DNA of 64,000 nucleotides from positions 752,494,001 through 752,558,000 of the forward strand of contig NC_091282.1 of NCBI RefSeq assembly GCF_032444005.1, given 5' to 3'. This DNA comes from Ranitomeya imitator (Eukaryota). Made by a program: the position numbers and the translations under genes. The notes beneath the pieces are model-generated. The model worked only from the letters and a program-made list of their open reading frames with translations, was not told the origin of the DNA and made no database searches. Positions 5,806-41,908 of this stretch are shown piece after piece. Position 1 is the first letter of the stretch. The number at the start of each line of letters is the position of its first letter.

Positions 5806-5808
5806 CAC

Positions 5809-6619
5809 TGTTATGAAAGGTAATTCAGTACCACAATGGACATAGAGGTCAGAGCACATACAGTGACCTGACAATAACCCAAAAACATAGAACGAGCTCT
5901 GAGACGTGGGAACTCTGCTGACCGCAATCCCTAATCCTCTCCAACCACACTAGAGGCAGCCGTGGATTGCGCCTAACGCTCCCTATGCAACTCGGCACAG
6001 CCTGAGAAACTAGCTAGCCTGAAGATAGAAAATAAGCCTACCTTGCCTCAGAGAAATACCCCAAAGGAAAAGGCAGCCCCCACATATAATGACTGTGAGT
6101 TAAGATGAAAAGACAAACATAGAGATGAAATAGATTTAGCAAAGTGAGGCCCAACTTTCTGAACAGAGCGAGGATAGGAAAGGTAACTTTGCGGTCAACA
6201 CAAAACCCTACAAAAACCACGCAAAGGGGGCAAAAAGACCCTCCGTACCGAACTAACGGCACGGAGGTACACCCTCTGCGTCCCAGAGCTTCCAGCAAGC
6301 AGAAAAAAACAAATTGACAAGCTGGACAGAAAAAAACAGCAAACAAATAGCAAAGAGGAACTTAGCTATCCAGAGCAGCAGGCCACAGGAACGATCCAGG
6401 AGGAAACAGGTCCAATACTAGAACATTGACTGGAGGCCAGGATCAAAGCACTAGGTGGAGTTAAATAGCGCAGCAACTAACGACTTCACCACATCACCTG
6501 AGGAAGGAAACTCAGAAGCCGCAGTACCACTTTCCTCCACCAACGGAAGCTCACAGAGAGAATCAGCCGAAGTACCACTTGTGACCACAGGAGGGAGCTC
6601 TGCCACAGAATTCACAACA
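5809..6619 (-). repeat. 5' LTR of the Gypsy element (TATA-like TATTTAA at 6467-6461)
   Basis: Direct repeat of 815-1627, adjacent to the PBS. Confidence 0.95.
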
Positions 6620-6769
6620 GTAAACCACTGTTTGGGTGCACGGCAGAGCTCGGAAGGAAAAGAGTACCGTTTTACTTTTTCAACGCAGAATTGTATGGAT
6701 TGAGATTGGAAGTCATGTTGCGTTTGCAGAGCCCCTGGTGTGTCTAAATAGTAGACACCTCCAATTCTA

Positions 6770-8395
6770 CAGTCATGGCCAAAAGTTTTGACACCCCTGC
6801 AATTCTGTCAGATAATGCTCATTTTCTTCCAGAAAATGATTGCAAACACAAATTCTTTGGTATTATTATCTTCATTTAATTTGTCTTAAATGAAAAAACA
6901 CAAAAGAGCATGAAGCAAAAAGCAAAACATTGATAATTTCACACACAACTCCAAAAATGGGCCAGACAAAAGTATTGGCACCCTCAGCCTAATAATTGGT
7001 TGCACAACCTTTAGCCAAAATAACTGCGACCAACAGCTTCCGGTAACCATCAATGAGTTTCTTACAATGCTCTGCTGGAATTTTAGACCATTCTTTGGCA
7101 AACTGCTCCAGGTCCCTGATATTTGAAGGGTGCCTTCTCCAAACTGCCATTTTTAGATCTCTCCACAGGTGTTCTATGGGATTCAGGTCTGGACTCATTG
7201 CTGCCCACCTTAGAAGTCTCCAGTGCTTTCTCTCAAACCATTTTCTAGTGCTTTTTGAAGTGTGTTTTGGGTCATTGTCCTGCTGGAAGACCTATGACCT
7301 CTGAGGGAGACCCAGCTTTCCCACATTGGGCCCTACATTATGCTGCAAACTTTGTTGGTATTCTTCAGACTTCATAAGGCCATGCACACGGTTAAGCAGT
7401 CCAGTGCCAGAGGCAGCAAAGCAACCCCAAAACATCAGGGAACCTCCCCATGTTTGACTGTAGGGACCGTGTTCTTTTCTTTGCCTCTTTTTTGCTCCTG
7501 TAAACTCTATGTTGATGCCTTTGCCCAAAAAGCTCTACTTTTGTCTCATCTGACCAAAGAACATTCTTCCAAAACGTTTTAGGCTTTTTCAGGTATGTTT
7601 TGGCAAACTGCAGCCTGGCTTTTTTATGTCTCTGGGTAAGAAGTGGGGTCTTCCTGGGTCTCCTACCATACAGTCACTTTTCATTCAGACGCCGACGGAT
7701 AGTACGGGTTGACACTGTTGTACCCTCGGACTGCAGGGCAGCTTGAACTTGTTTGGATGTTAGTCGAGGTTTTTTATCCAACATCCGCACAATCTTGCGT
7801 TGAAATCTCTTGTCAATTTTTCTTTTCCGTCCACATCTAGGGAGGTTAGCCACAGTGCCATGGGCTTTAAACTTCTTGATGACACTGCGCACGGTAGACA
7901 CAGGAACATTCAGGTCTTTGGAGATGGACTTGTAGCCTTGAGATTGCTCATGCTTCCTCACAATTTGGTTTCTCATGTCCTCAGACAGTTCTTTGGATTT
8001 CTTTCTTTTCTCCATGCTCAATGTGGTACACACAAGGACACAGGACAGAGGTTGAGTCAACTTTAATCAATGTCAACTGGCTGCAAGTGTGATTTAGTTA
8101 TTGCCAACACCTGTTAGGTGCCACAGGTAAGTTACAGGTGCTGTTAATTACACAAATTAGAGAAGCATCACATGATTTTTCGAACAGTGCCAATACTTTT
8201 GTCCACCCTCCTTTTTATGTTTGGTGTGAAATTATATCTAATTTGGCTTTAGGACAATTCTTTTTGTGTTTTTTCATTTAAGACAAATTAAATGAAGATC
8301 ATAATACCAAATAATTTGTTTGCAATCATTTTCAGGAAGAAACTGAGTATTAGCTGACAGAATTGCAGGAGTGTCAATACTTTTGGCCATGACTG
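6770..8395 (-). mobile_element. Tc1 DNA transposon with degraded transposase
   Basis: TIRs CAGTCATGGCCAAAAG...CTTTTGGCCATGACTG flanked by TA. Frameshifted transposase pieces: MEKRKKSKELSEDMRNQIV (8060-7674), GGSLMFWGCF and SPDLNPIEHLW. Confidence 0.93.
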
Positions 8396-9466
8396 TAACT
8401 CCAACCTTAACACCCACACACCCCTAACCCTAATCCCAACCCCACGGGTCATTCCATATCAAGTGATCCAAATATGAATATTTTTTTTTACCTGACGTCT
8501 TTAGATTTTTTTTCTTTGTTTTTATGTAGTACAACTTTAGTTAATTACAAATTAAAAGTTTTGGATTTTTTTCTAAGTCAGTTAATTTTTTACAGATTTC
8601 TAAAGTTTTGAAAAAGCACAGATTTTCGCCTGATATGGCTTTACATTTTTTATCATATCTCGGGCTAGAATTAAGATAAAGAGGTTGGAGAGGCATCATT
8701 TTCCTCAGAACAGTACCGGCTTTCATTTGATATGCCTCAAGACTATGTTTCTTTATATTTTGTTTTGTAGAAATTGAATTCAAAATTTTGATGCGCAATT
8801 GTGAAAAAAAGTGTTTTAAAATATTTGAAATAATGCATGTGTGTTACTTGTGTTCTTGTTTATATTTGCAAATAGATTAATGGCTGCACTCAAAATTAAT
8901 CTGTGCTAGAGCAAGGAAATGTGCGATACATGAAATGGGAATAGCATAATGGCTTGTGAAATATATGAAAAAACACATGAGATTCTTAGCACAAGATTTG
9001 GTCAAAAGTTGTGAGCCCATCCACCAATCGTCAAGGTAATCTCTGATCGGATGGGTACCTGAGCTGACTTGTTTATATTTGTACAGGGATTCAACTTGGG
9101 ACCTATCAAATTTTTATTTTTTTTAAGCCTTGAATCATCTGATTTTGTTTGTGCGAGTTTCTTCCTTTTTTCTTTTCAAATTACAGCTTATTGAATTCAA
9201 CATTTATATGCAACAATAAAGTAACAAAAAAACAAATGCCGAAGTGCCAGAATAAATACATCTTAATCATAACACAACTTGCTCAGCATTTTCAACCTGA
9301 ATGTATTGAACAAGCCAAAAGAAAAAGGTGATCATATCCTCAAATGTGATTTTCTAAATAGTCTCATCCTAATTATTTAAAACAAGATTAAAAGAACCAA
9401 TATTTGTTCTACCTATTTATACACGTAACAATTTTTTTTCTATTATATCACTAAACATGTAATTTA

Positions 9467-9822
9467 TGAATTGTCACACACATACCAAAGCTCGCAAAAT
9501 CAACAGACAGCCCTGGCACACCAGCCTGACCAAAGAACTGAGGCGAGCTTCCAGGGCTGCTGAGCGGAGATGGAAAAGATCCCACTCCAATGAGCACTTC
9601 ATTGCATTCAAACAGTCCCTCACTACTTTCAAGACCACAATCGCCACAGCTAAACAAACCTACTTTTCATCGCTCATGTCCTCCCTGTCTCACAACCCTA
9701 AACAATTATTCAACACCTTCAATTCTCTCCTCCATTGCCCAGCACCTCCTCCCTCCCCACTTATCAACTGAAGACTTTGCCTCATTTTTCAAGCAGAAGA
9801 TTGATAACATCAGAGACAGTTA
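9467..9822 (+). mobile_element. L2/CR1-type LINE ORF2 fragment (endonuclease-RT linker)
   Basis: Translation PWHTSLTKELRRASRAAERRWKR...AKQTYF...NPKQLFNTFNSLL...EDFASFFKQKIDNIR, with one frameshift. Confidence 0.75.
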
Positions 9823-9845
9823 TAGTCGACAACCTCGACTGAACG

Positions 9846-12800
9846 GGCCACACCCTTATTACATCACCATTCAGAGCATGCTGTTGCTAGCTGCGCCCGC
9901 CTCCAGTGCTGGACTGGCCACACCCTTATTACACCATTCAGAGCATCCTGTTGCTAGTTGAGCCCGCCTCCAGTGCTGAACTGGCCACACACTTATTACA
10001 TCACCATTCAGAGCATGCTGTTGCTAGCGGAGCCCGCCTACAGTGCTGGACTGGCCACACCCTTATTACATCACCATTCAGAGCATGCTGTTGCAAGTTG
10101 AGCCCACCTACAGTGCTGGACTGGCTACACCCTTATTACATCACCATTCAGAGCATGCTGTTGCTAGCTGAGCCCGCCTACAGTGCTGGACTGGCCACAC
10201 CCTTATTACATCACCATTCAGAGCATGCTGTTGCTAGCTGAGCCCGCCTACAGTGCTGGACTGGCCACACCCTTATTATATCACCATTCAGAGCATGCTG
10301 TTGCTAGCTGAGCCCGCCTACAGTGCTGGACTGGCCACACCCTTATTACATCACCATTCAGAGCATACTGTTGCTAGCTGAGCCCGCCTACAGTGTGGAC
10401 TGGCCACACCCTTATTATATCACCATTGAGAGCATGCTGTTGCTAGCTGAACCCGCCTACAGTGCTGGACTGGCCACACCCTTATTACATCACCATTCAG
10501 AGCATGCTGTTGCTAGCTGAGCCCCCTACAGTGCTGGACTGGCCACACTCTTATTACATCACCATTCAGAGCATGCTGTTGCTAGTTGAGCCCTCCTACA
10601 GTGCTGGACTGGCCACACTCTTATTACATCACCATTCAGAGCATGCTGTTGCTAGCTGAGCCCGCCTACAGTGCTGGACTGGCCACACCCTTATTACATC
10701 ACCATTCAGAGCATGCTGTTGCTAGCTGAGCCCGCCTACAGTGCTGGACTGGCCACACCCTTATTATATCACCATTCAGAGCATGCTGTTGCTAGCTGAG
10801 CCCGCCTACAGTGCTGGACTGGCCACACCCTCAGTACATCACCATTTAGAGCATGCTGTTGCTAGTTGAGCCCCCTACAGTGCTGGACTGGCCGCACCCT
10901 TATTATATCACCATTCAGAGCATGCTGTTGCTAGCTAAGCCTGCCTACAGTGCTGGACTGGCCACACCCTTATTACACCATTCAGAGCATCCTGTTGCTA
11001 GTTGAGCCCGCCTCCAGTGCTGAACTGGCCACACCCTTATTACATCACCATTCAGAGCATGCTGTTGCTAGCGGAGCCCGCCTACAGTGCTGGACTGGCC
11101 ACACCCTTATTACATCACCATTCAGAGCTTGCTGTTGCTAGCTGAGCCCGCCTACAGTGCTGGACTGGCCACACCCTTATTACATCACTATTCAGAGCAT
11201 GCTGTTGCTAGTTATGCACCGCCTACAGTGCTGGACTGGCCACACCCTTATTATATCACCATTCAGAGCATGCTGTTGCTAGCTGAGCCCTCTACAGTGC
11301 TGGACTGGCCACACTCTTATTACATCACCATTCAGAGCATGCTGTTGCTAGTTGAGCCCTCCTACAGTGCCGGACTGGCCACACCCTTATTACATCACCA
11401 TTCAGAGCATGCTATTGCTAGTTGAGCCCGCCTACATTTCTGGACTGGCCACACCCTTATTACATCACCATTCAGAGCATATTGTTGCTAGCTGAGCCCG
11501 CCTACAGTGCTGGACTGACCACACCCTTATTACATCACCATTCAGAGCATTCTGTTGCTAGCTGAGCCCGCCTACAGTGCTGGACTGACCACACCCTTAT
11601 TACATCACCATTCAGAGCATGCTGTTGCTAGCTGAGCCCCCTAGAGTGCTGGACTGGCCACACTCTTATTACATCATTATTCAGAGCATGCTGTTGCTAG
11701 CTGAGCCCCCTACAGTGTTGGACTGGCCACACCCTTATTACATCACCATTCAGAGCATGCTGTTGCTAGCTGAGTTCCCTACAGTGCTGGACTGGCCACA
11801 CCCTTATTACATCACCATTCAGAGCATACTGTTGCTAGCTGAGACCCCTACAGTGCTGGACTGGCCACACCCTTATTACATCACCATTCAGAGCATACTG
11901 TTGCTAGCTGAGCCCCCTACAGTGCTGGACTGGCCACATTCTTATTACATCACCATTCAGAGCATGCTGTTGCTAGCTGAGCCCCCTACAGTGCTGGACT
12001 GGCCACATTCTTATTACATCACCATTCAGAGCATGCTGTTGCTAGCTGAGCCCGCCTACAGTGTTGGACTGGCCACACCCTTATTACATTACCATTCAGA
12101 GCATCCTGTTGCTAGCTGAGTTCCCTACAGTGCTGGACTGGCCACACCCTTATTACATCACCATTCAGAGCATACTGTTGCTAGCTGAGCCCCCTACAGT
12201 GCTGGACTGGCCACATTCTTATTACATCACCATTCAGAGCATGCTGTTGCTAGCTGAGCCCCCTACAGTGCTGGACTGGCCACACCCTTATTACATCACC
12301 ATTCAGAGCATACTGTTGCTAGCTGAGCCCCCTACAGTGCTGGACTGGCCACATTCTTATTACATCACCATTCAGAGCATGCTGTTGCTAGCTGAGCCCG
12401 CCTACAGTGTTGGACTGGCCACACCCTTATTACATTACCATTCAGAGCATCCTGTTGCTAGCTGAGTTCCCTACAGTGCTGGACTGGCCACACCCTTATT
12501 ACATCACCATTCAGAGCATGCTGTTGCTAGCTGAGTTCCCTACAGTGCTGGACTGGCCACACCCTTATTACATCACCATTCAGAGCATACTGTTGCTAGC
12601 TGAGACCCCTACAGTGCTGGACTGGCCACACCCTTATTACATCACCATTCAGAGCATACTGTTGCTAGCTGAGCCCCCTACAGTGCTGGACTGGCCACAC
12701 CCTTATTACATCACCATTCAGAGCATACTGTTGCTAGCTGAGCCCCCTACAGTGCTGGACTGGCCACATTCTTATTACATCACCATTCAGAGCATGCTGT

Positions 12801-14609
12801 TGCTAGCCGAGCCCCCTACAGTGCTGGACTGGCCACATTCTTATTACATCACCATTCAGAGCATGCTGTTGCTAGCTGAGCCCGCCTACAGTGTTGGACT
12901 GGCCACACCCTTATTACATTACCATTCAGAGCATCCTGTTGCTAGCTGAGCCCCCTACAGTGCTGGACTGGCCACACCCTTATTACATCACCATTCATAG
13001 CATACTGTTGCTAGCTGAGCCCCCTACAGTGTTGGACTGGCCACACCCTTATTACATTACCATTCAGAGCATCCTGTTGCTAGTTGAGCCCCCTACAGTG
13101 CTGGACTGGCCACACCCTTATTACATCACCATTCAGAGCATACTGTTGCTAGCTGAGTTCCCTACAGTGCTGGACTGGCCACACCCTTATTACATCACCA
13201 TTCAGAGCATGCTGTTGCTAGCTGAGTTCCCTACAGTGCTGGACTGGCCACACCCTTATTACATCACCATTCAGAGCATACTGTTGCTAGCTGAGACCCC
13301 TACAGTGCTGGACTGGCCACACCCTTATTACATCACCATTCAGAGCATACTGTTGCTAGCTGAGCCCCCTACAGTGCTGGACTGGCCACACCCTTATTAC
13401 ATCACCATTCAGAGCATACTGTTGCTAGCTGAGCCCCCTACAGTGCTGGACTGGCCACATTCTTATTACATCACCATTCAGAGCATGCTGTTGCTAGCCG
13501 AGCCCCCTACAGTGCTGGACTGGCCACATTCTTATTACATCACCATTCAGAGCATGCTGTTGCTAGCTGAGCCCGCCTACAGTGTTGGACTGGCCACACC
13601 CTTATTACATTACCATTCAGAGCATCCTGTTGCTAGTTGAGCCCCCTACAGTGCTGGACTGGCCACACCCTTATTACATCACCATTCATAGCATACTGTT
13701 GCTAGCTGAGCCCCCTACAGTGTTGGACTGGCCACACCCTTATTACATTACCATTCAGAGCATCCTGTTGCTAGTTGAGCCCCCTACAGTGCTGGACTGG
13801 CCACACCCTTATTACATCACCATTCAGAGCATACTGTTGCTAGCTGAGTTCCCTACAGTGCTGGACTGGCCACACCCTTATTACATCACCATTCAGAGCA
13901 TACTGTTGCTAGCTGAGACCCCTACAGTGCTGGACTGGCCACACCCTTATTACATCACCATTCAGAGCATACTGTTGCTAGCTGAGCCCCCTACAGTGCT
14001 GGACTGGCCACATTCTTATTACATCACCATTCAGAGCATGCTGTTGCTAGCTGAGCCCCCTACAGTGCTGGACTGGCCACATTCTTATTACATCACCATT
14101 CAGAGCATGCTGTTGCTAGCTGAGCCCCCTACAGTGCTGGACTGGCCACACCCTTATTACATCACCATTCATAGCATACTGTTGCCAGCTGAGCCCCCTA
14201 CAGTGCTGGACTGGCCACACCCTTATTACATCACCATTCATAGCATGCTGTTGCTAGCTGAGCCCCCTACAGTGCTGGACTGGCCACACCCTTATTACAT
14301 TACCATTCAGAGCATACTGTTGCTAGCTGAGCCCCCTACAGTGCTGGACTGGCCACACCCTTATTACATCACCATTCATAGCATACTGTTGCTAGCTGAG
14401 CCCCCTACAGTGCTGGACTGGCCACACCCTTATTACATCACCATTCATAGCATACTGTTGCTAGCTGAGCCCCCTACAGTGCTGGACTGGCCACACCCTT
14501 ATTACATCACCATTCATAGCATACTGTTGCTAGCTGAGCCCCCTACAGTGCTGGACTGGCCACATTCTTATTACATCACCATTCATAGCATACTGTTGCT
14601 AGCTGAGCC
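9846..14609. repeat. 69/70-bp tandem minisatellite, roughly 68-69 copies
   Basis: Unit CCACACCCTTATTACATCACCATTCAGAGCATGCTGTTGCTAGCTGAGCCC(G)CCTACAGTGCTGGACTGG. Confidence 0.97.
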
Positions 14610-16598
14610 GGCCTCCTGCTTCCAGGGCTGTGCTTGATTGACAGGTAGTTTGTCGCAGCACAGACCAGAAATCTTTACTTCTTTCAACAGTCCAGAGGAA
14701 AGAGCTGGTGGTCACATGACTACATGCGATCTCGCAGGAACAGAGCAGAACTCCTAACAGCATGTAAATTATGAAGTTTCCTTATTGCTCACACGCTTTA
14801 CAATGGTGAAATAAACCACATTAATACCCCCATACACAATAAAGTGACTGAAACCCATCCCTAATATGGACGTGCTTTTGACTCTTTCCCCTGGAAATAT
14901 GATGTCAGGGGATAGGAGCATCGGGCATGGTGATCCATTTGGTTTTTAGATAGATTAGCGGAGGAATCTGGTAGCTGCTAACTCCACTCTCCCCATTGAG
15001 AACATGAACAGCATTTCTCCCTGATGTTTGGGCACATGTCTGCATGAAACTTTTAGCATGAGGTAGCGTCTTCCACCCTGATGAAGATGTCGGTTGGTGG
15101 AGGGATGACTAAATCGAATAGCAGGAGCACCTAAGGAAAGACTGCATCATGGCTGTCACACACCATCTTCCCACCTCGGTTCTACAGAAACAGACTTGTG
15201 GTGCTCCATACAGGGTCAGCCCCACTATGGGGGGGGGGGGTCTGCGGCTGCTGGTGCACGATTATGCTCATTATTTCATTTGCATCGGTTATGATACATC
15301 TCCCCCATAAAGTGATGCTTGCTCCAAACGTAATCCTCCCCATATATTTCATTACGCAGTAATGAGAGCGAACGCCTGGAGACCACTGCGGTTTTATCCT
15401 GCTGGTAAAATTTAATTTTCAAGCTACAGCAAGTATGAGTCTTAAAATATAAAGCTCTGACAGGAGATCACAGAATATTCAATGTCTTTACACTCGGCTG
15501 ATGGAGAAGAATGTGGATTTCATGCACAAGTTGCATAGTAACAGTAACAAAAACAAAACAACAAAATAGTCTGCAGCACATTTATAAATAATAGCTATAA
15601 AGCATGAGCTGTGGAATCCCCTTTATGTAAATGGAGGGAACATTTCCTCGAAGAAAAACAAGCTTCACAGTAAGTGGAAGGTGAATCTTAAAAGGATTTT
15701 TGCTTTATACAATGCAGAGTATTCGTCTTGAATAGAGGGTGGTCAGACCGTTCATCACCCTAGTCAACGAAGATCTTTTCTCCCTTTGGAGAACCTGATG
15801 CTGTGTGCTTGACATGGAATCATGTAATGCTCCTTTTCCTCTGTGGTGGCGCTGCATACAAAAAATAGAAAACACTCGCTGCTTTATCTCCCTGGAGGAG
15901 AGCCGATCGCAGAGGGTCACAGTAGTGGGATCTGTACACTATTAAGATTGTTCAAAGCAAGAGAACGACGTAAAAAAGAAATGAAAAGTCACTTCTAAGG
16001 GAGTCCTTTAGATTAAATGGCATTGGTGTTCTTCCACCACAAGTGACACTTACTAGAAAGCTGAAGTACAGGATGCCACAACACCCTTGTTAGTACTTCC
16101 GCTAAAGGGGTATTCCAACCTGCTAAAGTCCAGGCATATTGCCTGAGAATGAAGGGACCACAAATGATGGGTTTAGCACTGCATCCCAACTACTGCACAG
16201 CCCCATTTGGGTCAGTGGGGTTCTGCTGCAGTCTCCTACACAACTGTTGACTAAGAAAATTTAGAAGATGCTGTGCTAAAATAGCTCTGTAGCCTCTCCA
16301 TTTTTAAAAGATAGATTCAAACAGAAATAACCTAGCCAGGGAGTGTTGCTGTTCCTTTACTCTGCTAATTTGGGGTCCGGCGGTAGGAATCCTACCGATC
16401 ACACACCACTTCTTCTTTAAAAGGTGTCTACAGATGCTGCTGGCACTTCAGCAGGAGATCTAAGGGATTGGCAACCAAATTCAGTCCCCTCATCCCCCCT
16501 TTCCCACTGGCACCTTGGAGGACCCTTAGTTTGACATGTCCCTATTAAAGGTGGTCTTTCTGTCAGATTCTCTTATACTTCATCCACAATTCACATTT

Positions 16599-19500
16599 TT
16601 AGCTCAGGGACCCATTGATATTAGTCAGCATGGCACACACAGCCCATAACTGATTGGCTATGCCAGCTAAAGCGTATGGCAAAACATTATCGAACAGGTG
16701 ATACTGGCGGACCCGCTCTATGTCTTGGTTAATGCATATTCTTAGAGCAATAGAATTAATGTCTTTGTCGAGTCCAGACGCTTCCTTATTAGCCTTCCCC
16801 ATGTGGGCTTCGCACATCGTCAGCTCCTCCAGGCCGTAACGTTCATCCTTAATAACAATCTCTTGACTTTTGCCAGAGTCTCTTATTTCCGCTCCAGTGT
16901 GATCTACAGGACCCTCGTCTCCCATGTTTTCCGTGGTGGTCACCACCTCCTCCACTAATTTCTCCTCTGTCACAACTTCCTCAACCACATCCATCTCTCC
17001 AGCAGACTGCTCAAGTTCCACAACTTCATCTTCTACTCCCGTTGAGGTCACCACCAAGGTCTCCTGCCCCTCTTCGTTGGTGGACGCAAGGATGAACATG
17101 GCGTTCTGTTCGGTTGGCGGCTGGTTTAACATGACTGTTGCATCTTGGCACTCCCTAGGGAGGGTGGCGGTCGTAATAATGGGAGGGATGACCACAGAGG
17201 CACCAACGGATTCCACCAAATCTTGGATGAGGAAATCCTTCTCAGTGACCACCCAATCTCCAGATTCCAGTAATTCCAAGATGCCAGACGACTTAATAAT
17301 CTCTCTCTTTGATGCACTCCCGGAATAGAGTGGGCTTATAAATATGACAGCTCCGTGAGGGGCTATGCCAAGCAAGCCTTTGTAAATGGCACGGTTATAA
17401 GATATTGGAGAACGTAAGCTTTCCGTGTTGCTTGTCTGCACCTTAACTTCTGCACAATGTAAAGTCACTCGGGCACGTGGGTATGAAGCCTTAAAACATT
17501 CTGGTACCTCCTGGCAACCAGTTTCCCGACTTCGCCAAAGGGGTATTTCACTAAGGACCAGATACAAATAGTGTGCCCACGTGATAACAATCCTGGCAAC
17601 TCTGGTCTGAGAGATCTTGAACCGAACAGCTAGATCTTGATCATGGAATCCCTGACGGACTTTGCATAAAAATAAGAAAAACTGGTCGATCTGCGGCATG
17701 GCCTCCGATTCTGCTGACATCTCCTTGTTGATGGTCATATTCCCTTCCTCTTGGCATTGCCTCCACTTTTCCAAGCTGCCCTCTGTGTCAGTCAGGGTTG
17801 AGAAAACTACTTTTAAAGTGGAATAATTCTTAAATCCAGTATAAAAGTGGATAAGGCTCGAGTCTGTGGAAAACCGATCCAGAAAGAAGAGATTCTTCTC
17901 CAGGGCAGCGTTGCGTTGCTGTAATCTGGCAATCTCCTCACGGGCTGCGTGCAGCATTTCCGTATCGGTCATGGGTGGTAAGTCGTAGCAGTGGTCCATT
18001 ATGGAAGCCGTCATCTCTAGCGGTTGGGAGGATTTATAGTTTTGTACTTGGGGTTGTGAAGGCAAAATGGGTTGAAGCATGTTTTTACTGCTCCTGGCGA
18101 CATGATAGAAACAAAGAAGAAAGACATCAGTTTCATCACAACGCTAACACTTTGCCATAACTACACGTGGAAATGGAGTCCATATGACACATGCACTTGG
18201 GTCTAACACCTTCCTAACATTGGACGTACTGATAAATCCACTGTTGGGTGCCCGAGCATAATGTGGGCACATTGGCTGCACCCAAACAATATCTGGAAGA
18301 TGCTGGCTATGCTACACAGCCAGCATCTGCCTCTAACAGCAGTGAGTGGAGCGAGTATACACCTTGTCGCGGTGGGACAGCTTTAAGCATTTTTTTTTAT
18401 TCATCAAAAACAGTGTTTACCAAGTACCCTATGTTAATTATTTAATGCAATTGCTTTTTTACTTTTTTATTTTCATTAGGGTATATGCACACATTGCTAT
18501 TTTTTTCATTTTGTGCATGATGTCAAGTCATATGCCGGCTCAGTTTTTTGTTTTTCTGTGATTCTTATTAGGGTAGAACTTATCTTGGGAATAATTCCCT
18601 AAAAGGATTTGTTGGCACACAGGTTGATAAATGGCCGAATAAGGGTTCACAAGAACGCTCCTGCCTGATCACTGGCCTGTATGAAAATGGTATGAATCCG
18701 CTGACAATCTTTTACGTGGCCTAAACATGCACGCGGCACATCTCGTGAGATTGGGGGATGATGTGCTAAAGATATGGGGGTCTATTAAGTATTTTAACAA
18801 TAAGGCTTCCGTCACACTAGCAGTATTTGGTCAGTATTTTACATCAGTATTTGTAAGCCAAAACCAGGAGTGGAACAATTAGAGGAAAAGTATAATAGAA
18901 ACATATGCACCACTTCTGCATTTATCACCCACTCCTGGTTTTGGCTTACAAATACTGATGTAAAATACTGACCAAATACTGCTAGTGTGACGGCAGCCTT
19001 ACTTGACCCCCGTCTGCAACAATGAGGCCTGTAAGCGGCTCAATGCACCCATGACTGGTAGGAACTTGACGGTGCAAATGGGTTTTAGCACGATTACTGG
19101 GATTACCCCGGTAGTGCCACATAGTTTTTGATGTGCGCTCTGGAATATGAGGGATAATAAATATTAATTTAACAAAATTTATATTCACATTTTCCAGTTA
19201 ATTAATAAGTCGAGTAAGAAGTGCACAGGCAGTCATACTGTTACCCAGCTTTAAGAGGGAAAGGCAAAGTTGGCTACAGTCTTCTCAGAAAGAAAACCCT
19301 TGTGCTTTATTAAAGGGGAAGTCCAGAATTTGAAAAAAATAAAAAAATGGCAGCTTTCTATCAGAAACAGCACCACCTCTGACCATGGACTGTGTCAGCA
19401 GCTGCACTCCATCCACTTCAACTGGGTTCAACTCCAATACCACACAACAACCCATGGACCCATGGTCGACGGGGTGACGCTGGTTTTTGAAAGAAAAACA

Positions 19501-21351
19501 GACATTTTCTAGACCTCAACAACCACTTTAAGGCATTTGGATATCTTAAACTATGTTCACTTCTCATTTTTGGCTGTTCCCTTACAGTGTGTCCTTTCGT
19601 CTCTATGCCCCCATCTTTGGCCAATAGAATCATTTTGCCTCTGTCCCTTTGCTTTTCTCTGAAAAAAATGACCTATACTGCATAAGTGTTGGCCAATCTA
19701 CGGTGTGCCCCTAAATGTCTTTACAGAAGCATATGGCAGAGATATGCAGTGGGGAACATTGCTGATATTTGTCAAAAATAGCCAAAAACAAGAGGCAAAA
19801 AGTCTTCGAGGAGCACCCTGTCTGCCGTACATGATAAGAGCAGCTACAGCAGGATTCGGCTCAGCCTGGACATATATTAAATGTTCACCCAATCATATAG
19901 CACATAAGGCTACAATTTACCCTGATTTCCTCTTTGGGACAGACATCTGCTCCTGGGTCATGTCTTCTGTGGACCACTGGAAAATGCACGGCACGCTGTA
20001 CGGCTGGAGATTCCTTTTTCCTGTTAATGTTCTCATAAAATCAGACGGGAGAAAATGTTTGGAGCAAACTCTGGTGCAGCTGGAGACCTGAAATGAGAAG
20101 ACAAGAACGCTTGCAAGGAGTCAGAAAATACGGCAACGTCAGTCAGATTACATAAAATCAATGACACTAGAAGAAAACGGTTGTATGGGTCGGGTATAAG
20201 ATATGAGGAGAAATCATAGACTGAAAAATCTAGTCTAGATAAGAAAGTTCTGTATAAGTAATTCACCCCTCCATGACGGCAAATATTTATGCTTTTCTTC
20301 TTTTAACAGGTGGTTCGCCTGTCGCTCTGGGGGGTCCTTCTGTCTCTTGGGGTGGGTGCCTGTCGCTCTGGGGAGGGGGCTTCCACCTGTCGCTTGGAGG
20401 ATCCTCCTGTCCCTCTGAAAAAGGGGGAGGGCGTCCGCCTGTCCCTCTGAAAAAGGGGGAGGGCGTCCGCCTGTCCCTCTGAAAAAGGGGGAGGGCGTCC
20501 GCCTGTCCCTCTGAAAAAGGGGGAGGGCGTCCGCCTGTCCCTCTGAAAAAGGGGGAGGGCGTCCGCCTGTCCCTCTGAAAAAGGGGGAGGGCGTCCGCCT
20601 GTCCCTCTGAAAAAGGGGGAGGGCGTCCGCCTGTCCCTCTGAAAAAGGCGAGGGAATCCGTTCTGTATAAGTAATTCACCCCTTCATGACGGCAAATATT
20701 TATGCTTTTCTTCTTTTAACAGGTGGTTCGCCTGTCGCTCTGGGGGGTCCTTCTGTCTCTTGGGGTGGGTGCCTGTCGCTCTGGGGAGGGGGCTTCCACC
20801 TGTCGCTTGGAGGATTCTCCTGTCCCTCTGAAAAAGGGGGAGGGCGTCCGCCTGTCCCTCTGAAAAAGGGGGAGGGCGTCCGCCTGTCCCTCTGAAAAAG
20901 GGGGAGGGCGTCCGCCTGTCCCTCTGAAAAAGGGGGAGGGCGTCCACCTGTCCCTCTGAAAAAGGCGGAGGGAGTCCGCCTGTCCCTCTGAAAAAGGCGA
21001 GGGCGTCCGCCTGTCCCTCTGAAAAAGGCGAGGGCGTTCGCTTGTCCCTCTGAAAGAGGCGAAGGCGTCCGCCTGTACCTCTGGAAAGGGGAGGGCGTCC
21101 GCCAGTCACCCTGGGCGTCCACCGCAGACTGTTATATTCCGCTTCATAAGCCGGATATTATACGATATAACTGACGTTCTGGCAATCACCTTAAAGCTGG
21201 GCCCCGGCTCCCGGCGGATGCGGCTCAGCCAGTCCCGGTGTCTCTGCGGCTCCACATGGAAGGCCGGGATCCTGTGGAATGAGATCTTCTTATCGGCATT
21301 GTACCTGGAGTCACTGTTACAGAGGGGGACACAGCAGTGATAGGCAGCCAT
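16599..21351 (-). CDS. THAP-domain + DDE_Tnp_4 (ISL2EU/PIF-Harbinger-like) transposase-derived protein, 607 aa, 3 coding exons
   Basis: Exons 21351-21190, 20087-19921 and 18093-16599 have GT-AG boundaries and splice in frame. THAP C2CH signature: CCVPLC...FHRIP...W...VCSKHF...VPCIF. Also HTH_Tnp_4-like FFLFLCKVRQG..QDLAVRFKIS and DDE-region motifs with substituted catalytic residues. Confidence 0.85.
18804..18998. mobile_element. MITE (Tourist/Harbinger-like) in intron 2 of the THAP-DDE gene
   Basis: Long TIRs GGCTTCCGTCACACTAGCAGTATTTGGTCAGTATTTTACATCAG... and their inverse, flanked by TAA/TTA. Confidence 0.85.
20243..21120. repeat. 413-bp tandem duplication containing a 32-bp minisatellite
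   Basis: Identical ORF starts at 20273 and 20686 give a 413-bp period. Inner unit CCTGTCCCTCTGAAAAAGGGGGAGGGCGTCCG. Confidence 0.92.
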
Positions 21352-21700
21352 GTGGGGAGCATCAGCCTACAGCATGCCGGGCCCTAGGTTGCCGATTCTC
21401 TGCTCTAACGCCTGCTGCCCACCACCTGGCACTGCCCTCCTCTCACTACCAGACCCGGGCACCTTCCTTCTTTAGCCTTTTTAAACTTGCTCGTCTACGC
21501 AGCACCATACAATTCCACGCATGCGCGTTGTAGTCCCTTTCGGGACGCCTGCGTAGTCAGTCTGAACGCGGTTTCCTGAAAAAAATGCGCATGCCCGGTT
21601 GTCCTTACGTCAGCGGACGGGGAAAGATGACGTCCACACACCCGGAAGTGGTGTTTGTCAGTCTTCCTTGCATGGTTTTCCTCGCTGGTAGTCGGTGCCG
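21352..21700. promoter_or_regulatory. CpG-rich bidirectional promoter (THAP-DDE gene / FAU)
   Basis: NRF1-like GCGCATGC at 21518-21526 and 21586-21594, CRE-like TTACGTCA at 21605-21612, ETS CCGGAAGT at 21642-21649, and a pyrimidine tract CTTCCTT at about 21663 (possible 5'TOP start). No other CpG-rich promoter is seen before FAU exon 2. Confidence 0.65.
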
Positions 21701-23000
21701 GAGGTGCGGTAACTAGCGGCGATAGTCGGAGACTTGCGCTCTGCTTGTTTATGAACATGTATAGCTTTTGCTTTAATTAAGTAGTTGAAAAAAACTTTTT
21801 TTTTTCTGTTTACAACCGCTTGTGACGCCATTTTCCGAAGCCCACCACATTCATTCGTCGGAGTGGTGTCAGGGATTGGATTTTGTGTTCTGAGTTGTGT
21901 TTTTACTGTTGCCATCTTGCGGTACATACAATGTTTTTACCGCCTTTTATTGCAGCCGCCAAAAAGCCACAGTTCTGTCATTTTGATTTTCCTTTTCGGA
22001 TTAATTTATTTCATATTTTGATAGATCAGACTTCTAGGAAAGCAGCGATACCAAATGTTTTTTTTTTCATTTCTTAATTTTTTAATGGGGGTGGGGGGTA
22101 GAAGTGCGGTGATTTGAACTTTAACCCCTTTACCCCCAAGGGTGGTTTGCACGTTAATGACCGGGCCAATTTTTACAATTCTGACCACTGTCCCTTTATG
22201 AGGTTATAACTCCGAAACGCTTCAACGGATCCTGGTGATTCTGACATTGTTTTCTCGTGACATATTGTACTTCATGATAGTGGTAAAATTTTTTTGATAG
22301 TACCTGCGTTTATTTGTGAAAAAAACGGAAATTTGGCGAAAATTTTGAAAATTTCGCAATTTTCAAACTTTGAATTTTTATGCAATTAAATCACAGAGAT
22401 ATGTCACACAAAATACTTAATAAGTAACATTTCCCACATGTCTCCTTTACATCAGCATAATTTTGGAAACAATTTTTTTTTTTGTTAGGGAGTTATAAGG
22501 GTTAAAAGTTGACCAGCAATTTCTCATTTTTACAACACCATTTTTTTTTAGGGACCACGTCTCATTTGAAGTCATTTTGAGGGGTCTATATGATAGAAAA
22601 TGCCCAAGTGTGACACCATTCTAAAAACTGCACCCCTCAAGGTACTCAAAACCACATTCAAGAAGTTTATTAACCCTTCAGGTGTTTAATAGGAATTTTT
22701 GGAATGTTTAAATAAAAATGATACATACATGCTAGCCACCTTAGGGAGAGACCCAAGTTGGGCTAAATGTAGCGGGACGAAAGAGACCGAAAAGCCCTCT
22801 ACTTAAAGGAAATACATAGTGGATGCTTTCCTGAAACGGAAAGTACTTGCAAGCAGCATAATACAAAGAATAGCAGGTTTACCCAGAATCCTTTGCAGTA
22901 GGCGGAGCTATGCAAATCATCTCTTTCCACCCCTGTCTAATCCACAGCGCTTGGAATCGCCAAGCGTGCAATGCTGCGGATTAGTTTCTAAATTTACACA

Positions 23001-23715: not shown

Positions 23716-26700
23716 TTGTGTAAATTTAGAAACTAATCCGCAGCATTGCACGCTTGGCGATTCCAAGCGCTGTGGATTAGACAGGGGTGGAAAGAGATGA
23801 TTTGCATAGCTCCGCCTACTGCAAAGGATTCTGGGTAAACCTGCTATTCTTTGTATTATGCTGCTTGCAAGTACTTTCCGTTTCAGGAAAGCATCCACTA
23901 TAAATAAAAATGAACATTTAACTTTTTTACACAAAAAATTTACTTCAGCTCCAATTTGTTTTATTTTACCAAGGGTAACAGGAGAAATTGGACCCAAAAA
24001 AGTTGTTGTCCAATTTGTCCTGAGTACGCTGATACCCCATATGTGGCAGTAAACCACTGTTTGGGCGCATGGGAGAGCTCGGAAGGGAAGGAGCGCTATT
24101 TGACTTTTCAATGCAAAATTGACAGGAATTGAGATGGGACGCCATGTTGCGTTTGGAGAGCCACTGATGTGCCTAAACATTGAAACCCCCCACAAGTGAC
24201 ACCATTTTGGAAAGTAGACCCCCTAAGGAACTTATCTGGATGTGTGGTGAGCACTTTGACCCACCAAGTGCTTCACAGAAGTTTATAATGCAGAACCGTA
24301 AAAATAAAAAATCATATTTTTTCACAAAAATTATATTTTTGCCCCCAATTTTTTATTTTTCCAAGGGTAAGAGAAGAAATTGGACCTCAAAAGTTGTTGC
24401 CCAATTTGTCCCGAATACGCTGATACCCCATATGTGGCAGTAAACCACTGTTTGGGCGCATGGGAGAGCTCGGAAGGGAAGGAGCGCCGTTTGACTTTTC
24501 AATGCAAAATTGACAGGAATTGAGATGGGACGCCATGTTGCGTTTGGAGAGCCACTGATGTGCCTAAACATTGAAACCCCCCACAAGTGACACCATTTTG
24601 GAAAGTAGACCCCCTAAGGAACTTATCTGGATGTGTGGTGAGCACTTTGACCCACCAAGGGCTTCACAGAAGTTTATAATGCAGAGCCATGCAAATAAAA
24701 AATATTTTTTTTTCCACAAAAATTATATTTTAGCCCCCAGTTTTGTATTTTTCCAAGGTTAGCAGGAGAAATTGGACCCTAAATGTTGTTGTCCAATTTG
24801 TCCTGAGTACGCTGATACCTGATATGTGGGGGGGAACCACCGTTTGGGCGCATGGGAGGGCTCGGAAGGGAAGGAGCATCATTTGGAATGCAGACTTAGA
24901 TGGATTGGTCTGCAGGCGTCACATTGCGTTTGCAGAGCCCCTAATGTACCTAAACAGTAGAAACCCCCCACAAGTGACCCCATATTGGAAACTAGACCCC
25001 TCAATGAACTTATCTAGATGTGTTGTGAGAACTTTGAACCCCCAAGTGTTTCACTACAGTTTATAACGCAGAGCCGTGAAAATAAAAAATCTTTTTGTTT
25101 TCCCACAAAAATTATTTTTTAGCCCCCAGTTTTGTATTTTCCCAAGGGTAACAGGAGAAATTGGTCCACAAAAGTTGTTGTCCAATTTGTCCTGAGTACG
25201 CTGATACCCCATATGTTGGGGTAAACCCCTGTTTGGGCACACAGGAGAGCTCGGAAGGGAAGGAGCACTGTTTTACTTTTTCAACGCAGAATTGGCTGGA
25301 ATTGAGATCGGACGCCATGTCGTGTTTGGAGAGCCCCTGATGTGCCGAAACAGTGGAAACCCCCCAATTATAAATGAAACCCTAATCCAAACACACCCCT
25401 AACCCTAATCCCAACAGTAACCCTAACCACACCTCTAACCCTGACACACCCCTAACCCTAATCCCAACCCTATTCCCAACTGTAAATGTAATCTAAACCC
25501 TAACCCTAACTTTAGCCCCAACCCTAACTGTAGCCCCAACCCTAGCCCTAACCCTAGCCCTAGCCCTAACCCTAGCCCTAATGGGAAAATGGAAATAAAT
25601 ACATATTTTTTTATTTTTCCCTAACTAAGGGGGTGATGAAGGGGGATTTGATTTACTTTTATAGCGAGTTTTTTAGCGGATTTTTATGATTGGCAGCCGT
25701 CACACACTGAAAGACCCTTTTTATTGCAAAAAATATTTTTTGCAATACCACATTTTGAGAGCTATAATTTTTCCATATTTTGGTCCACAGAGTCATGTGA
25801 GGTCTTGTTTTTTGCGGGACGAGTTGACGTTTTTATTGAAAACATTTTTGGGCACGTGACATTTTTTGATCGCTTTTTATTCCGATTTTTGTGAGGAAGA
25901 ATGACCAAAAGCCAGCTATTCATGAATTTCTATTGGGGGAGGCGTTTATACCGTTCTGCGTTTGGTAAAATTGATAAATCAGTTTTATTCTTCGGATCAG
26001 TACTATTACAGCGATACCTCATTTATATCATTTTTTTTCTGGTTTGGCGCTTTTATACGATAAAAACTATTTTACAGAAAAAATAATTATTTTTGCATCG
26101 CTTTATTCTCAGGACTATAACTTTTTTATTTTTTTGCTGATGATGCTGTATGGCGGCTCTTTTTTTGCGGGACAATATGACGCTTTCAGCGGTACCATGG
26201 TTATTTATATCTGTCCTTTTGATCGCGTGTTATTCCACTTTTTGTTCGGCGGTATGATAATAAAGCGTTGTTTTTTGCCTCTTTTTTTTTTTTTTTCTTA
26301 CGGTGTTTACTGAAGGGGTTAACTAGTGGGACAGTTTTATAGGTCGGGTCGTTACGGACGCGGCGATACTAAATATGTGTACTTTTATTGGTTTTTTTTT
26401 TTATTTAGATGAAGAAATGTATTTATGGGAATAATATTTTTTTTTTTTTTCATTATTTTGGAATTTTTTTTTTTTTTTTTTTTTACACATTTGGAAAAAT
26501 TTTTTTTTACTTTTTTACTTTGTCCCAGGGGGGGACATCACAGATCAGTGATCTGACAGTTTGCACAGCACTCTGTCAGATCACTGATCTGACATGCAGC
26601 GCTGCAGCCTTCACAGTGCCTGCTCTGAGCAGGCTCTGTGAAGCCACCTCCCTCCCTGCAGGACCCGGATCCGCGGCCATCTTGGATCCGGGGCTGGAGG

Positions 26701-27456
26701 GAGCAGGGAGGGAGGTGAGACCCTCGCAGCAACGCGATCACATCGCGTTGCTTCGGGGGTCTCAGGGAAGCCCGCAGGGAGCCCCCTCCCTGCGCGGTGC
26801 TTCCCTGCACCGCCGGCACATCGCGATCATCTTTGATCGCGGTGTGCCAGGGGTTAATGTGCCGGGGGCGGTCCGTGACCGCTCCTGGCACATAGTGCCG
26901 GATGTCAGCTGCGATAAGCAGCTGACACCCGGCCGCGATCGGCCGCGCTCCCCCCGTGAGCGCGGCTGATCGGCTATGACGTACTATCCCGTCCAGGGTC
27001 AGATAAGCCCAGGGCACCTCGACGGGATAGTACGTCTAAGGTCACAGAGGGGTTAATATTTCATTTTATTCAAATTTTTAAAACTTTTTAAAAAAAAACT
27101 TTTCACTGTATTTCTTAGTCACCTTACATCAGTAATCCAATACAAGCGAATTCGGCTTCTTAAATTGCAAAAACTTAATTAAATAGACACGAATATAGGT
27201 GAGGCTTTCTGAACCCTTTACTTAGTTCCCTTAGGGACATGAACCCTCGATCGCCTGATCGCTTCTGCTATATACAGCGATACCACAGCATTGCTGTGTT
27301 TGGCAGAAATCGCGATTTCCTATGAATGCCAGTCACGGGTTGTCTAGCTATCATAGGAGTAACATCATCACAGGCACAGGGTGGCCGTCTTGGCAACCCA
27401 TTGGCTGATGGTTCTAAGATTTAATTGCTTTCTCTTTTTTTTTTTTCAGTATGACA

Positions 27457-41908
<14,452 letters not shown>

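Follow-up and report, generated by a model that had tools for sequence, protein, structure and literature searches.

The stretch of Ranitomeya imitator DNA analysed here (the window, 64,000 nucleotides) encodes on its minus strand a protein that combines a THAP zinc finger with a transposase core whose catalytic residues have been replaced, and it raises the question of whether this is a transposon, the remains of one, or a gene of the frog itself. The reading we favour, at a probability of roughly 85%, is that of a host gene derived from a whole ISL2EU-type (PIF/Harbinger-like) transposase and now, in amphibians only, serving as a THAP-type regulator of transcription or chromatin rather than as a mobile element.

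Translation of the window gave three GT-AG exons on the minus strand which join into an uninterrupted protein of 607 aa, as a sequence-only reading of this DNA had proposed, and the transcript contigs agree with this model. The exon 2 donor was corrected to CAGG/GTAAAT, one base further 3' than in a naive reading. At 100% identity the product matches P0001, a Ranitomeya imitator entry of 607 aa labelled 'uncharacterized protein', and is already in the databases as an unnamed model; no publications on this amphibian gene were found in the literature. The features of the locus are as follows.

21190..21800, no strand: CpG-island bidirectional promoter, common with FAU (head-to-head)
21352..21530, minus: presumed 5'UTR, positioned from a contig extending 335 nt past exon 2 (exon 1 plus approximately 179 nt)
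21190..21351, minus: coding part of exon 1, aa 1-54, 162 nt; N-terminal THAP C2CH half (C7, C11)
20088..21189, minus: intron 1, GT-AG
19921..20087, minus: exon 2, aa 55-110, 167 nt; C-terminal THAP half (C62, H65, SVPCIF motif)
18094..19920, minus: intron 2, GT-AG, skipped by transcript contigs
16599..18093, minus: exon 3, 1495 nt with the stop codon, encoding aa 110-607
17985..17996, minus: DHCY, aa 143-146, fitting the HCF-1-binding-motif consensus [D/E]HxY, in a disordered linker
17895..17966, minus: coiled-coil helix, aa 153-176, predicted parallel homodimer interface
17550..17696, minus: HTH_Tnp_4 helix-turn-helix, aa 243-291
17151..17477, minus: N-terminal part of the RNase H-like DDE_Tnp_4 core, aa 316-424
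16797..17150, minus: acidic disordered insert separating the D2 and E3 positions, aa 425-542
16602..16796, minus: C-terminal core helices, aa 543-607
15400..16598, minus: 3'UTR, end approximate; transcript contigs cover 16200-16598 and then about 800 nt more

Intron 1 carries a 32-bp tandem repeat in two arrays (20402-20648 and 20819-21107).

The contigs of four runs, each belonging to a different study, leave out intron 2 precisely (joint 18092/19920, 1827 nt skipped, ends CT..AC on the plus strand, cut +1), and in the contigs of these runs the introns are without coverage, save for one repeat. Since the contigs are spliced and the introns empty, the source runs were taken to be RNA, which is a guess. 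A full-length mRNA contig of a related frog (L003) is collinear with all three exons, and together these contigs supply the spliced transcripts that the sequence-only reading had named as a check. The region from 21190 to 21800 has a GC content of 0.55 and a CpG observed/expected ratio of 0.81, as against 0.42-0.65 nearby, and motifs picked out by eye include an NRF1-like GCGCATGCG, a CRE-like TGACGT and an ETS-like CCGGAAGT. The CpG-rich character that had been ascribed to the promoter was borne out, but the promoter is not the gene's own, being held in common with FAU.

Two protein searches returned one orthologue per species from approximately 25 frogs, 3 caecilians and 4 salamanders, the score dropping from 351 bits for amphibian matches to 238 bits for the best other match. 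Over 30 species drawn from Anura, Gymnophiona and Caudata have an unbroken frame of about 600 aa, and since the orthologue identities range from 40 to 88%, these are not assembly or annotation copies of one sequence. The amphibian clade has an SH-aLRT support of 100 and branches of 0.04-0.13, compared with approximately 0.5-1 for the transposon-like rows. Within frogs the gene tree largely follows the species tree; it also joins salamanders with caecilians (support 96, by a quick method), whereas the accepted species tree places salamanders with frogs.

The order in frogs (Ascaphus, Xenopus, Bufo, Rana and Ranitomeya) is FKBP3, FAU (head-to-head), the gene and PRPF39. The neighbours are FAU and PRPF39 on either side in Ascaphus, PRPF39 in X. 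laevis, FKBP3 and FAU in Bufo, and FAU in Rana and Ranitomeya; in Ascaphus, Bufo and Rana, too, FAU adjoins the gene and is transcribed away from it. The conserved position for which the sequence-only reading had proposed a check in other anurans was found in Ascaphus, Xenopus, Bufo and Rana. Exon structure is conserved among the frogs compared, X. laevis and Ascaphus each having a matching 162-nt exon 1. No second copy was found in the 64-kb window, and with one orthologue per amphibian species in the protein searches no dispersed copies were seen. The locus is a genuine frog gene, which is expressed and apparently present in single copy.

The THAP, HTH_Tnp_4 and DDE_Tnp_4 domains recognised from the sequence were all found by Pfam, THAP being split over exons 1 and 2 (E 2e-7 and 7e-5) and the other two lying in exon 3 (E 6e-11 and 1e-14, respectively), where they follow a linker, an HCF-1-type motif and a coiled coil, the DDE_Tnp_4 core being interrupted by the acidic insert. 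Profile matches for the finger included THAP2 (E 4e-17) and THAP1 (E 2e-15), the structures of THAP1, THAP2 and THAP11 were matched, the finger residues C7, C11, C62, H65, P28 and W41 and the SVPCIF motif are present, and the predicted finger has a pLDDT above 90. The structure prediction is confident for the THAP and RNase H-like parts and gives residues 96-145 and 425-542 as disordered. The core, for which such a prediction had been suggested, matches the fold of DDE transposases and integrases, HARBI1 and Arabidopsis ALP1.

The coiled coil of the earlier reading was modelled as a helix at aa 153-176, which is predicted, with controls, to mediate parallel homodimerisation. The homodimer score was 0.52, compared with 0.00 for the best control, with in-register contacts over 153-179, at least 47% of contacts in common between runs, and a partner pLDDT of at least 69; 21 of 30 solved homodimers, but 0 of 23 monomers, attain the mark set for this score. 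Seven residues ahead of this helix lies DHCY, which is invariant in 32 of 32 amphibian orthologues, while [DE]HxY occurs in 40 of the 113 relatives as against 2 after shuffling. The consensus for HCF-1 binding is [D/E]HxY, and it sits beside the coiled coil in THAP proteins (PMC13631171). A canonical motif is no guarantee of binding, since THAP5 has one and yet failed co-immunoprecipitation (PMC13631171), and as DHCY was inherited from the transposon its conservation could serve another partner. The insert at aa 425-542 contains 30 D/E and 5 K/R, and spreads the D2 and E3 positions 150-210 residues apart in amphibians, compared with 30-55 in 107 transposon-like relatives. An acidic disordered insert of this kind, 120-160 aa in length, is unique to the amphibian clade.

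Alignment with transposon-like relatives, 113 in all, showed the three substitutions read from the sequence to be exact; in 75 of the relatives the catalytic columns hold D, D and E. The D1 position is H322 (VTLHCAE, 17457-17459), the D2 position is E394 (VVTEKDF, 17241-17243) and the catalytic E position is N565 (ICINQDI, 16728-16730). Every amphibian orthologue lacks at least one catalytic residue: the triad is H / D or E / D or N in frogs, with the D1 His invariant in all 25, S / D or A / E or D in salamanders (S/D/E in Ambystoma), and D / D / R or G in caecilians. The second-position change from D to E is confined to hyloid frogs, Mixophyes and X. tropicalis, and early-branching frogs have His/Asp/Asp. 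Since each order has lost triad residues in its own way, the gene of the common amphibian ancestor probably still had D-D-E, and the dead triad appears to be lineage-specific rather than ancestral.

Selection to retain the gene has been strong in all three amphibian orders. Compared with a related frog, whole-gene dN/dS is 0.119 (bootstrap 0.087-0.154), far from the value near 1 that the sequence-only reading had set against its own claim, and by part it is 0.04 for THAP, 0.055 for the HTH, 0.09 for the N-terminal part of the core, 0.04 for the C-terminus and 0.23 for the insert. Deeper computable pairs gave 0.08-0.11, with dS near or beyond saturation. The core is under purifying selection as strong as that on the THAP finger.

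Even conservative changes to the triad of DDE enzymes (the RNase H-like transposase/integrase family) are generally inactivating. Because the cutting site has decayed, the protein is most likely now a DNA-binding regulator. It is distinctly unlikely that it is domesticated yet enzymatic, a nuclease or recombinase working through a changed metal site or active only in lineages that keep two residues (caecilians with D/D/R, Ambystoma with S/D/E). Such a role would suit a core constrained like the finger (dN/dS 0.04-0.09), the invariance of the frog His, and an ancestor that, with different residues broken per order, was most parsimoniously D-D-E and maybe an active host gene for some time; HARBI1, a Harbinger-derived vertebrate gene, is also annotated as a putative nuclease. 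However, Ranitomeya imitator has all three positions changed, E to N removing the carboxylate, no triad position is consistently acidic across the clade, and constraint on a fold needs no catalysis, for which Arabidopsis ALP1 provides a non-catalytic precedent in the literature. Residual or altered catalysis may persist to some degree, given the invariant frog His, the D/D of caecilians, and the D2 and E3 of Ambystoma.

A related proposal, which we regard as rather unlikely, is that domestication preceded catalytic death. The stem-amphibian D-D-E gene would have been a THAP-guided site-specific nuclease or recombinase working for the host, and would then have been disabled three separate times (D1 to H in frogs, D1 to S in salamanders, E3 to R/G in caecilians); some ability to process DNA might linger in the two-residue lineages (caecilians and the axolotl), and in frogs the invariant His could give rise to a new metal site. 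If true, amphibians would present a natural series of one domesticated transposase at successive stages from enzyme to scaffold.

The source of the gene could be narrowed from the ISL2EU/PIF-Harbinger group, to which its architecture had been assigned, to the ISL2EU branch. ISL2EU elements are defined by a THAP + HTH + DDE transposase with a YqaJ-exonuclease second ORF (PMC4482050, PMC9179366). They are the nearest relatives of the frog protein, and in two relatives, L005 and L006, a YqaJ ORF lies next to the transposase. As the architecture fits the published description and these relatives carry the YqaJ ORF, ISL2EU ancestry of the gene is clearly indicated. The marks of a transposon were absent from the locus: no inverted repeats flank the gene in 14500-23000, in keeping with the lack of TIRs noted before, the one exception being an intronic hairpin repeat; no similarity to a YqaJ second ORF was found in the 64-kb window (best E 0.2); and no YqaJ-derived partner was found in amphibians.

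It is very unlikely that the protein acts in genome defence, as a dead transposase that binds ISL2EU-type ends through its THAP and HTH domains and poisons or silences its relatives. Retention of a DNA-binding and dimerising apparatus with catalysis lost is a dominant-negative design, and the nearest relatives are mobile ISL2EU elements. However, such elements have been reported absent from tetrapods (PMC9179366), and there is no amphibian transposon-like relative among the protein-search matches; a repressor would therefore have been without a target for most of the history of the clade, yet selection is strong. The acidic insert and the FAU CpG-island promoter, which is expected to be broadly active, also suggest a role directed at the host. 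That the locus is non-functional (a transposon copy in decay, an annotation error, or a relic that was processed or is transcribed) has next to no probability, since the broken triad, the bare 'uncharacterized' of the databases and the guess that the contig runs are RNA are set against a frame intact in all three amphibian orders, a dN/dS of 0.12, conserved introns, conserved frog synteny, and spliced transcripts in four studies with an mRNA contig in another frog.

The claim of a domesticated, catalytically degraded transposase is thus supported by frog synteny, dN/dS, spliced transcripts and the lost triad. In the regulator that we favour, the transposase would have been fixed before frogs, salamanders and caecilians diverged, at a site adjoining FAU and flanked by FKBP3 and PRPF39 as far as frog synteny tells. 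It would since have remained a gene of three exons, apparently in single copy, whose transcription starts from the bidirectional CpG promoter of FAU. The C2CH finger would bind DNA sequence-specifically, the coiled coil would form the predicted parallel homodimer, and the invariant DHCY in the disordered linker would bring in HCF-1 as a co-regulator, in the manner of cellular THAP proteins. The core, no longer cutting DNA, would persist under the observed constraint as a DNA- or protein-binding scaffold, and the long acidic insert might act in trans-activation, histone binding or auto-inhibition. DNA binding, HCF-1 recruitment and a regulatory role are what we infer from these features.

Among known systems, the ISL2EU transposases (PHIS / Harbinger-like superfamily) have the same order of THAP, [DE]HxY motif, coiled coil, HTH_Tnp_4 and DDE_Tnp_4, and copies from teleosts, starfish, molluscs and a sea spider are 35-43% identical to the frog protein. 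In contrast to them, the amphibian gene is without TIRs or a YqaJ ORF, is apparently single copy and is frog-syntenic with three conserved exons, has lost its triad, and carries an extra 120-160 aa between D2 and E3; it is evidently a descendant of ISL2EU elements and not a mobile member. HARBI1 is likewise a domesticated vertebrate protein with the DDE_Tnp_4 fold, and is the best match to the core among Swiss-Prot models (probability 1.00, TM by hit 0.40-0.43). Its DDE triad is intact, and its partner is the Myb-like NAIF1. Unlike the amphibian protein, it has approximately 350 aa, without THAP finger, coiled coil or acidic insert, and its identity of 14-16% is over the core alone. Identity as HARBI1 was rejected: Xenopus laevis has a separate HARBI1 (Q5U538), about 15% identical over the aligned core. 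Since Xenopus has its own HARBI1, the amphibian gene is a separate, independent domestication from a different branch.

Published accounts (PMC5339849, PMC9710019) describe dead or altered PIF/Harbinger cores kept in chromatin complexes in Arabidopsis ALP1/ALP2, HDP1 and Drosophila DPLG, and ALP1 is a fold match of the amphibian core. These are independent plant and insect events of the Harbinger/PIF branch, without THAP, and need a co-domesticated Myb or MADF partner for DNA binding, whereas the amphibian protein has its finger built in. THAP1, THAP2, THAP3 and THAP11 share the N-terminal C2CH finger followed by a [D/E]HxY motif by a coiled coil, for which a homodimer is predicted in the amphibian protein, but they have approximately 210-320 aa and no transposase core, whereas the amphibian protein keeps an HTH + DDE_Tnp_4 core of approximately 400 aa. 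THAP9 (fold match rank 1) is also a vertebrate host gene with a THAP finger and a transposase-derived RNase H-like core, but it belongs to the P-element superfamily and is reported to keep its catalytic residues and activity (PMC8230255). Identity as THAP9 was rejected, since Pfam, which assigned DDE_Tnp_4 and HTH_Tnp_4 here, found no domain of a P-element transposase, so that the gene is neither of the two named proteins from which it had already been set apart. It is a newly recognised domesticated transposase, of a kind already known.

The coding sequence of the gene was obtained by splicing the minus-strand reading with a script, which gave three exons:

21351-21190, minus strand: exon 1, 162 nt
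20087-19921, minus strand: exon 2, 167 nt, with donor CAGG/GTAAAT
18093-16599, minus strand: exon 3, 1495 nt including the stop

The introns are GT-AG throughout, and the open frame runs uninterrupted for 607 aa, as the sequence-only reading had proposed. The protein was a 100% match to P0001, a 607-aa 'uncharacterized protein' of Ranitomeya imitator, and a model of the gene is already in the databases without a name. Nothing on the gene was found in the literature searched. Pfam analysis placed a THAP domain across exons 1 and 2, and HTH_Tnp_4 and DDE_Tnp_4 domains in exon 3. Ranitomeya, X. laevis, and Ascaphus share an exon 1 of 162 nt; exon 2 measures 158-167 nt and exon 3 approximately 1.5 kb. 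Shorter isoforms of 488-595 aa with no THAP recorded are annotated in several species (P0011, P0020, P0022, P0027, P0030, and P0031), and the gene may regularly give rise to a THAP-less product through alternative splicing or another start site.

Transcript contigs from four runs in four studies, presumed to be RNA, were aligned over 16200-20300, with intron 1 left out because of its long 32-bp tandem array. In all four runs, one long contig passed from exon 3 into exon 2 by a jump from 18092/3 to 19920/1, which is exactly intron 2 (CT..AC on the plus strand) and confirms the proposed junction. Beyond exon 2 the contig extended 335 nt, corresponding to exon 1 and approximately 179 nt of 5'UTR, and on the 3' side the contigs reached approximately 800 nt past 16200. 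Within 16200-20300 the introns had no contig coverage except at a repeat (18803-19003). Since the contigs are spliced and the introns empty, these presumed RNA runs are read as cDNA. An mRNA contig of 1922 nt from a related frog (L003, SRR5149413) carries an entire, intronless 609-aa frame, and aligned to the window in three blocks whose ends are the three predicted exon borders.

Several repeats lie in and around the gene. Intron 1 (20273-21109) holds two 32-bp G/C-rich tandem arrays, at 20402-20648 (99% matches) and 20819-21107 (91%), which sit in two alike blocks of approximately 413 bp, each opening with the same unique segment of approximately 130 bp; the pairing suggests a recent local duplication. 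The repeat in intron 2 (18801-19001) is a hairpin of MITE-like appearance, with 73-nt arms that are 99% complementary and spaced by 55 nt. Its summed contig depth was 4,000-49,000 in the four runs, versus approximately 10-55 for the gene, and its flanks were many and different, indicating a very abundant repeat borne by many transcripts. Downstream of the 3'UTR is a satellite (9839-14609) of approximately 69 copies of a 69-bp unit, with 94% matches and a strong C-over-G skew. G-rich minisatellites with 33- and 39-bp units in up to 35 copies are found at 59351-62444, 54027-54386, and 35355-35592, and explain why the sequence at 59-63 kb is GC-rich and strongly skewed.

An AlphaFold2 model (mean pLDDT 76) was built from a 100-sequence alignment. 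The regions of the protein, with one short motif, are as follows:

aa 1-95: THAP finger, confidently modelled
aa 96-145: disordered linker
aa 143-146 (window 17985-17996, minus strand): DHCY, in the disordered linker, 7 residues before the coiled coil
aa 153-176: long helix
HTH region: helical
aa 317-411: RNase H-like core, β-β-β-α-β-α-β
aa 425-542: disordered stretch
aa 550-602: C-terminal helices

The predicted THAP and RNase H-like folds, together with the Pfam domains, agree with the architecture first read from the sequence. Fold searches matched the THAP domains of THAP1, THAP2, and the P element, and, generically and with low whole-chain TM, the transposases Mos1, piggyBac, ISCth4, and TnsB as well as retroviral integrases. 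Matches among Swiss-Prot models were to HARBI1 (including X. laevis HARBI1, at 15% identity), IS5-type transposases, and Arabidopsis ALP1 and ALP1-like proteins, while a sequence search of solved structures returned THAP domains only and no DDE_Tnp_4 core. These results indicate that the fold has been kept. They also set the gene apart from HARBI1 and THAP9, neither of which the sequence-only reading had recognised in it; orthology with either was rejected.

Helix 153-176 corresponds to the coiled coil proposed earlier. When two copies of residues 140-424 were predicted together, the score was 0.52, versus 0.00 for the best control; in the calibration of the tool, 21 of 30 solved homodimers came up to that mark, and none of 23 monomers did. 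Three runs had at least 47% of contacts in common, with a partner pLDDT of at least 69, and the predicted contacts were in register over 153-179, indicating a parallel coiled coil. The prediction thus supports dimerisation. The adjacent DHCY is unchanged in 32/32 amphibian sequences, and [DE]HxY occurs in 40 of the 113 transposon relatives versus 2 after shuffling. [D/E]HxY is the HCF-1-binding motif, which adjoins the coiled coil in most human THAP proteins and brings HCF-1 to promoters, though its presence is not always predictive of binding (PMC13631171).

The three columns expected to be catalytic in a DDE transposase (D1, D2, and E3) were examined in an alignment with 113 transposon-like relatives, in which D1 is D in 93, D2 is D in 96, and E3 is E in 89, with the full D-D-E set in 75. 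All three are substituted in the window protein (H322 / E394 / N565), as had been noticed from the sequence. The amphibian states are:

Frogs (25/25): D1 is H; D2 is mostly D, with E in hyloids, Mixophyes, and X. tropicalis; E3 is D outside Neobatrachia and N within
Salamanders: D1 is S; D2 is D (Ambystoma) or A; E3 is E or D
Caecilians: D1 is D; D2 is D; E3 is R or G

Not one substitution is common to all three orders. Parsimony, taking the transposons as outgroup, would give D-D-E in the last common amphibian ancestor, and the site was probably lost independently at least three times. In 107 relatives D2 and E3 lie 30-55 residues apart (median 47), versus 150-210 in every amphibian. The extra segment is predicted to be disordered and is acidic, with 30 D/E versus 5 K/R in 118 residues of the window protein; as a shared derived character it supports a single origin. 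In one starfish relative (P0036, Acanthaster) the first position is likewise H (VILHSVVL) and the catalytic E is replaced by R; this protein may represent either a copy in decay or a separate domestication within echinoderms.

Selection was estimated against L003, the only reliable pair, with an unsaturated dS of 0.64. Synonymous sites were saturated between Ranitomeya or L003 and Xenopus and between L003 and Ascaphus, and the other deep pairs were near saturation (dS 1.6-2.9). Across the whole gene dN/dS was 0.119 (bootstrap 0.087-0.154), far below 1. By region it was 0.04 for THAP, 0.14 for the linker, 0.14 for the coil and pre-HTH, 0.055 for the HTH, 0.09 for the N-terminal part of the core, 0.23 for the acidic insert, and 0.04 for the C-terminal helices. 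Constraint on the 'dead' core is as strong as that on the zinc finger.

A word-indexed search returned full-length relatives from approximately 25 frogs (60-87% identity; Ascaphus, Bombina, Discoglossus, and pipids through hyloids and ranoids), three caecilians (approximately 50% over the conserved part), and four salamander sequences (approximately 40%), all annotated 'uncharacterized' and with one gene per species. In an exhaustive search of 1.8 billion representatives the amphibian clusters scored 891, 376, and 352 bits, and the next match 239. The next-best matches came from starfish, teleosts, abalone and other gastropods, and a sea spider, and Haliotis has several copies per genome; this patchy, multi-copy distribution has the look of a mobile element. 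Neither search had an amniote, lungfish, coelacanth, or shark protein among its matches. In a maximum-likelihood tree built from 22 amphibian proteins and 53 transposon-like ones, every amphibian fell on a single branch (SH-aLRT 100), and the frogs branched successively as Ascaphus, Discoglossus, pelobatoids and pipoids, and finally Neobatrachia. Amphibian end branches were 0.04-0.13, versus a median of 0.49 over the whole set. The tree departed in one respect, pairing salamanders with caecilians, not frogs (support 96, quick search). By the tree and the frog neighbours, the amphibian sequences are best read as orthologues, not copies; for caecilians and salamanders, orthology is suggested by the tree, the single copy, and the shared acidic insert. 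Where records from these two orders could be read, no neighbour appeared within 10 kb. The gene is restricted to amphibians and, being found in all three orders, is about as old as crown Lissamphibia, approximately 300 million years.

The neighbouring gene in the window is:

21585 to about 41905, plus strand: FAU (ubiquitin-like plus ribosomal S30), about 20 kb, exons placed by Ascaphus match

The FAU coding model begins 234 bp upstream of the gene on the opposite strand. The promoter region that they share (21190-21800) has a GC of 0.55 and a CpG o/e of 0.81, in keeping with the CpG promoter first described, and NRF1-, CRE-, and ETS-like motifs were read in it by eye. The order of genes is FAU (divergent) - gene - PRPF39 (convergent) in Ascaphus, gene - PRPF39 in X. 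laevis, FKBP3 - FAU - gene in Bufo gargarizans, and FAU - gene in Rana temporaria and Ranitomeya, so that the synteny sought in frogs was found. Since Ascaphus, Bufo, and Rana, too, have FAU as the divergent neighbour, the pairing is old, and it would predict broad expression of the gene. Six-frame pieces from downstream regions in Ascaphus and Xenopus, used to look for PRPF39, had no match in window 1-16000; the only matches were to FAU exons (about 27454-27537, 40500-40823, and 41781-41905). PRPF39 probably lies farther off in the large Ranitomeya genome. The database model of FAU is 175 aa versus the usual 133-134, with its ATG (21585) within the promoter or first exon, and looks like an annotation over-extension. 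FAU introns contain tandem repeats of 381-391-bp units at 23923-25366 (3.7 copies) and 36778-39349 (6.6 copies). In frogs, FAU and the gene are placed between FKBP3 and PRPF39 (loci L001 and L002, and Bufo and Rana gene lists). In the human genome FKBP3 lies next to PRPF39 on chromosome 14, and FAU maps to chromosome 11; the pairing of FAU with the transposase gene may reflect a rearrangement specific to one lineage.

Published accounts characterise ISL2EU elements by a pair of ORFs: one encodes a transposase that combines DDE, HTH, and THAP domains, and the other contains a YqaJ exonuclease domain (PMC4482050; PMC9179366). A metagenome scan, using a profile from a 10-sequence alignment of transposon-like relatives, returned 80 loci. 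Of the three closest loci that were examined, two (L005 and L006) have an ORF adjoining the transposase that matches YqaJ (E 1e-13 and 8e-13). Together with the published domain set, this upholds the assignment to the ISL2EU group. Because the transposon relatives already share the THAP-to-DDE architecture, fusion of a host gene with a transposase was rejected. A YqaJ query, the ORF of an ISL2EU relative, matched corals, molluscs, amphioxus, a hemichordate, and fish; no amphibian, and hence no co-domesticated partner, was among the best 120 of 165 matches in this search, which depends on shared words. The 64-kb window contained neither YqaJ similarity nor a second gene copy, and, in agreement with the sequence-only reading, no inverted repeats were found flanking the gene.

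The gene derives from an ISL2EU-type transposase by domestication; it is confined to living amphibians and occurs throughout them. It is expressed and subject to strong purifying selection, and its active site was probably dismantled independently in each order. Co-option, as first suggested, is supported by frog synteny, the single gene per species, and the low dN/dS. We put at approximately 0.85 the probability that this is an immobile, domesticated gene of the host whose role is to bind DNA and serve as a scaffold. Its product would most likely regulate transcription or chromatin as a THAP-guided dimer, by way of an HCF-1-type motif, with the dead core and acidic insert as an interaction platform; the HCF-1 step alone has about even odds. 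Rival explanations are that the core retains residual enzymatic activity, that the gene is a transposon repressor, or that it has no function. A pseudogene was rejected given the intact frame, spliced contigs, and dN/dS, and an active transposon given the changed triad and a window empty of YqaJ, second copies, and flanking inverted repeats.

The gene is an ISL2EU descendant in tetrapods, a group reported to lack ISL2EU elements (PMC9179366). With different catalytic residues disabled in each order and the fold constrained, it offers a natural experiment on why a dead core is kept. The protein has a THAP finger of its own as well as the HCF-1-type motif and the coiled coil, and these provide a specific, testable hypothesis about its partner. 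As orthologues exist in Xenopus and axolotl, knock-out and ChIP are feasible. RAG1, THAP9, HARBI1, SETMAR, and the plant ALP and HDP genes are textbook domesticated transposases, new genes made from selfish DNA; in the literature searched, this would be the first domesticated gene traced to the ISL2EU branch.
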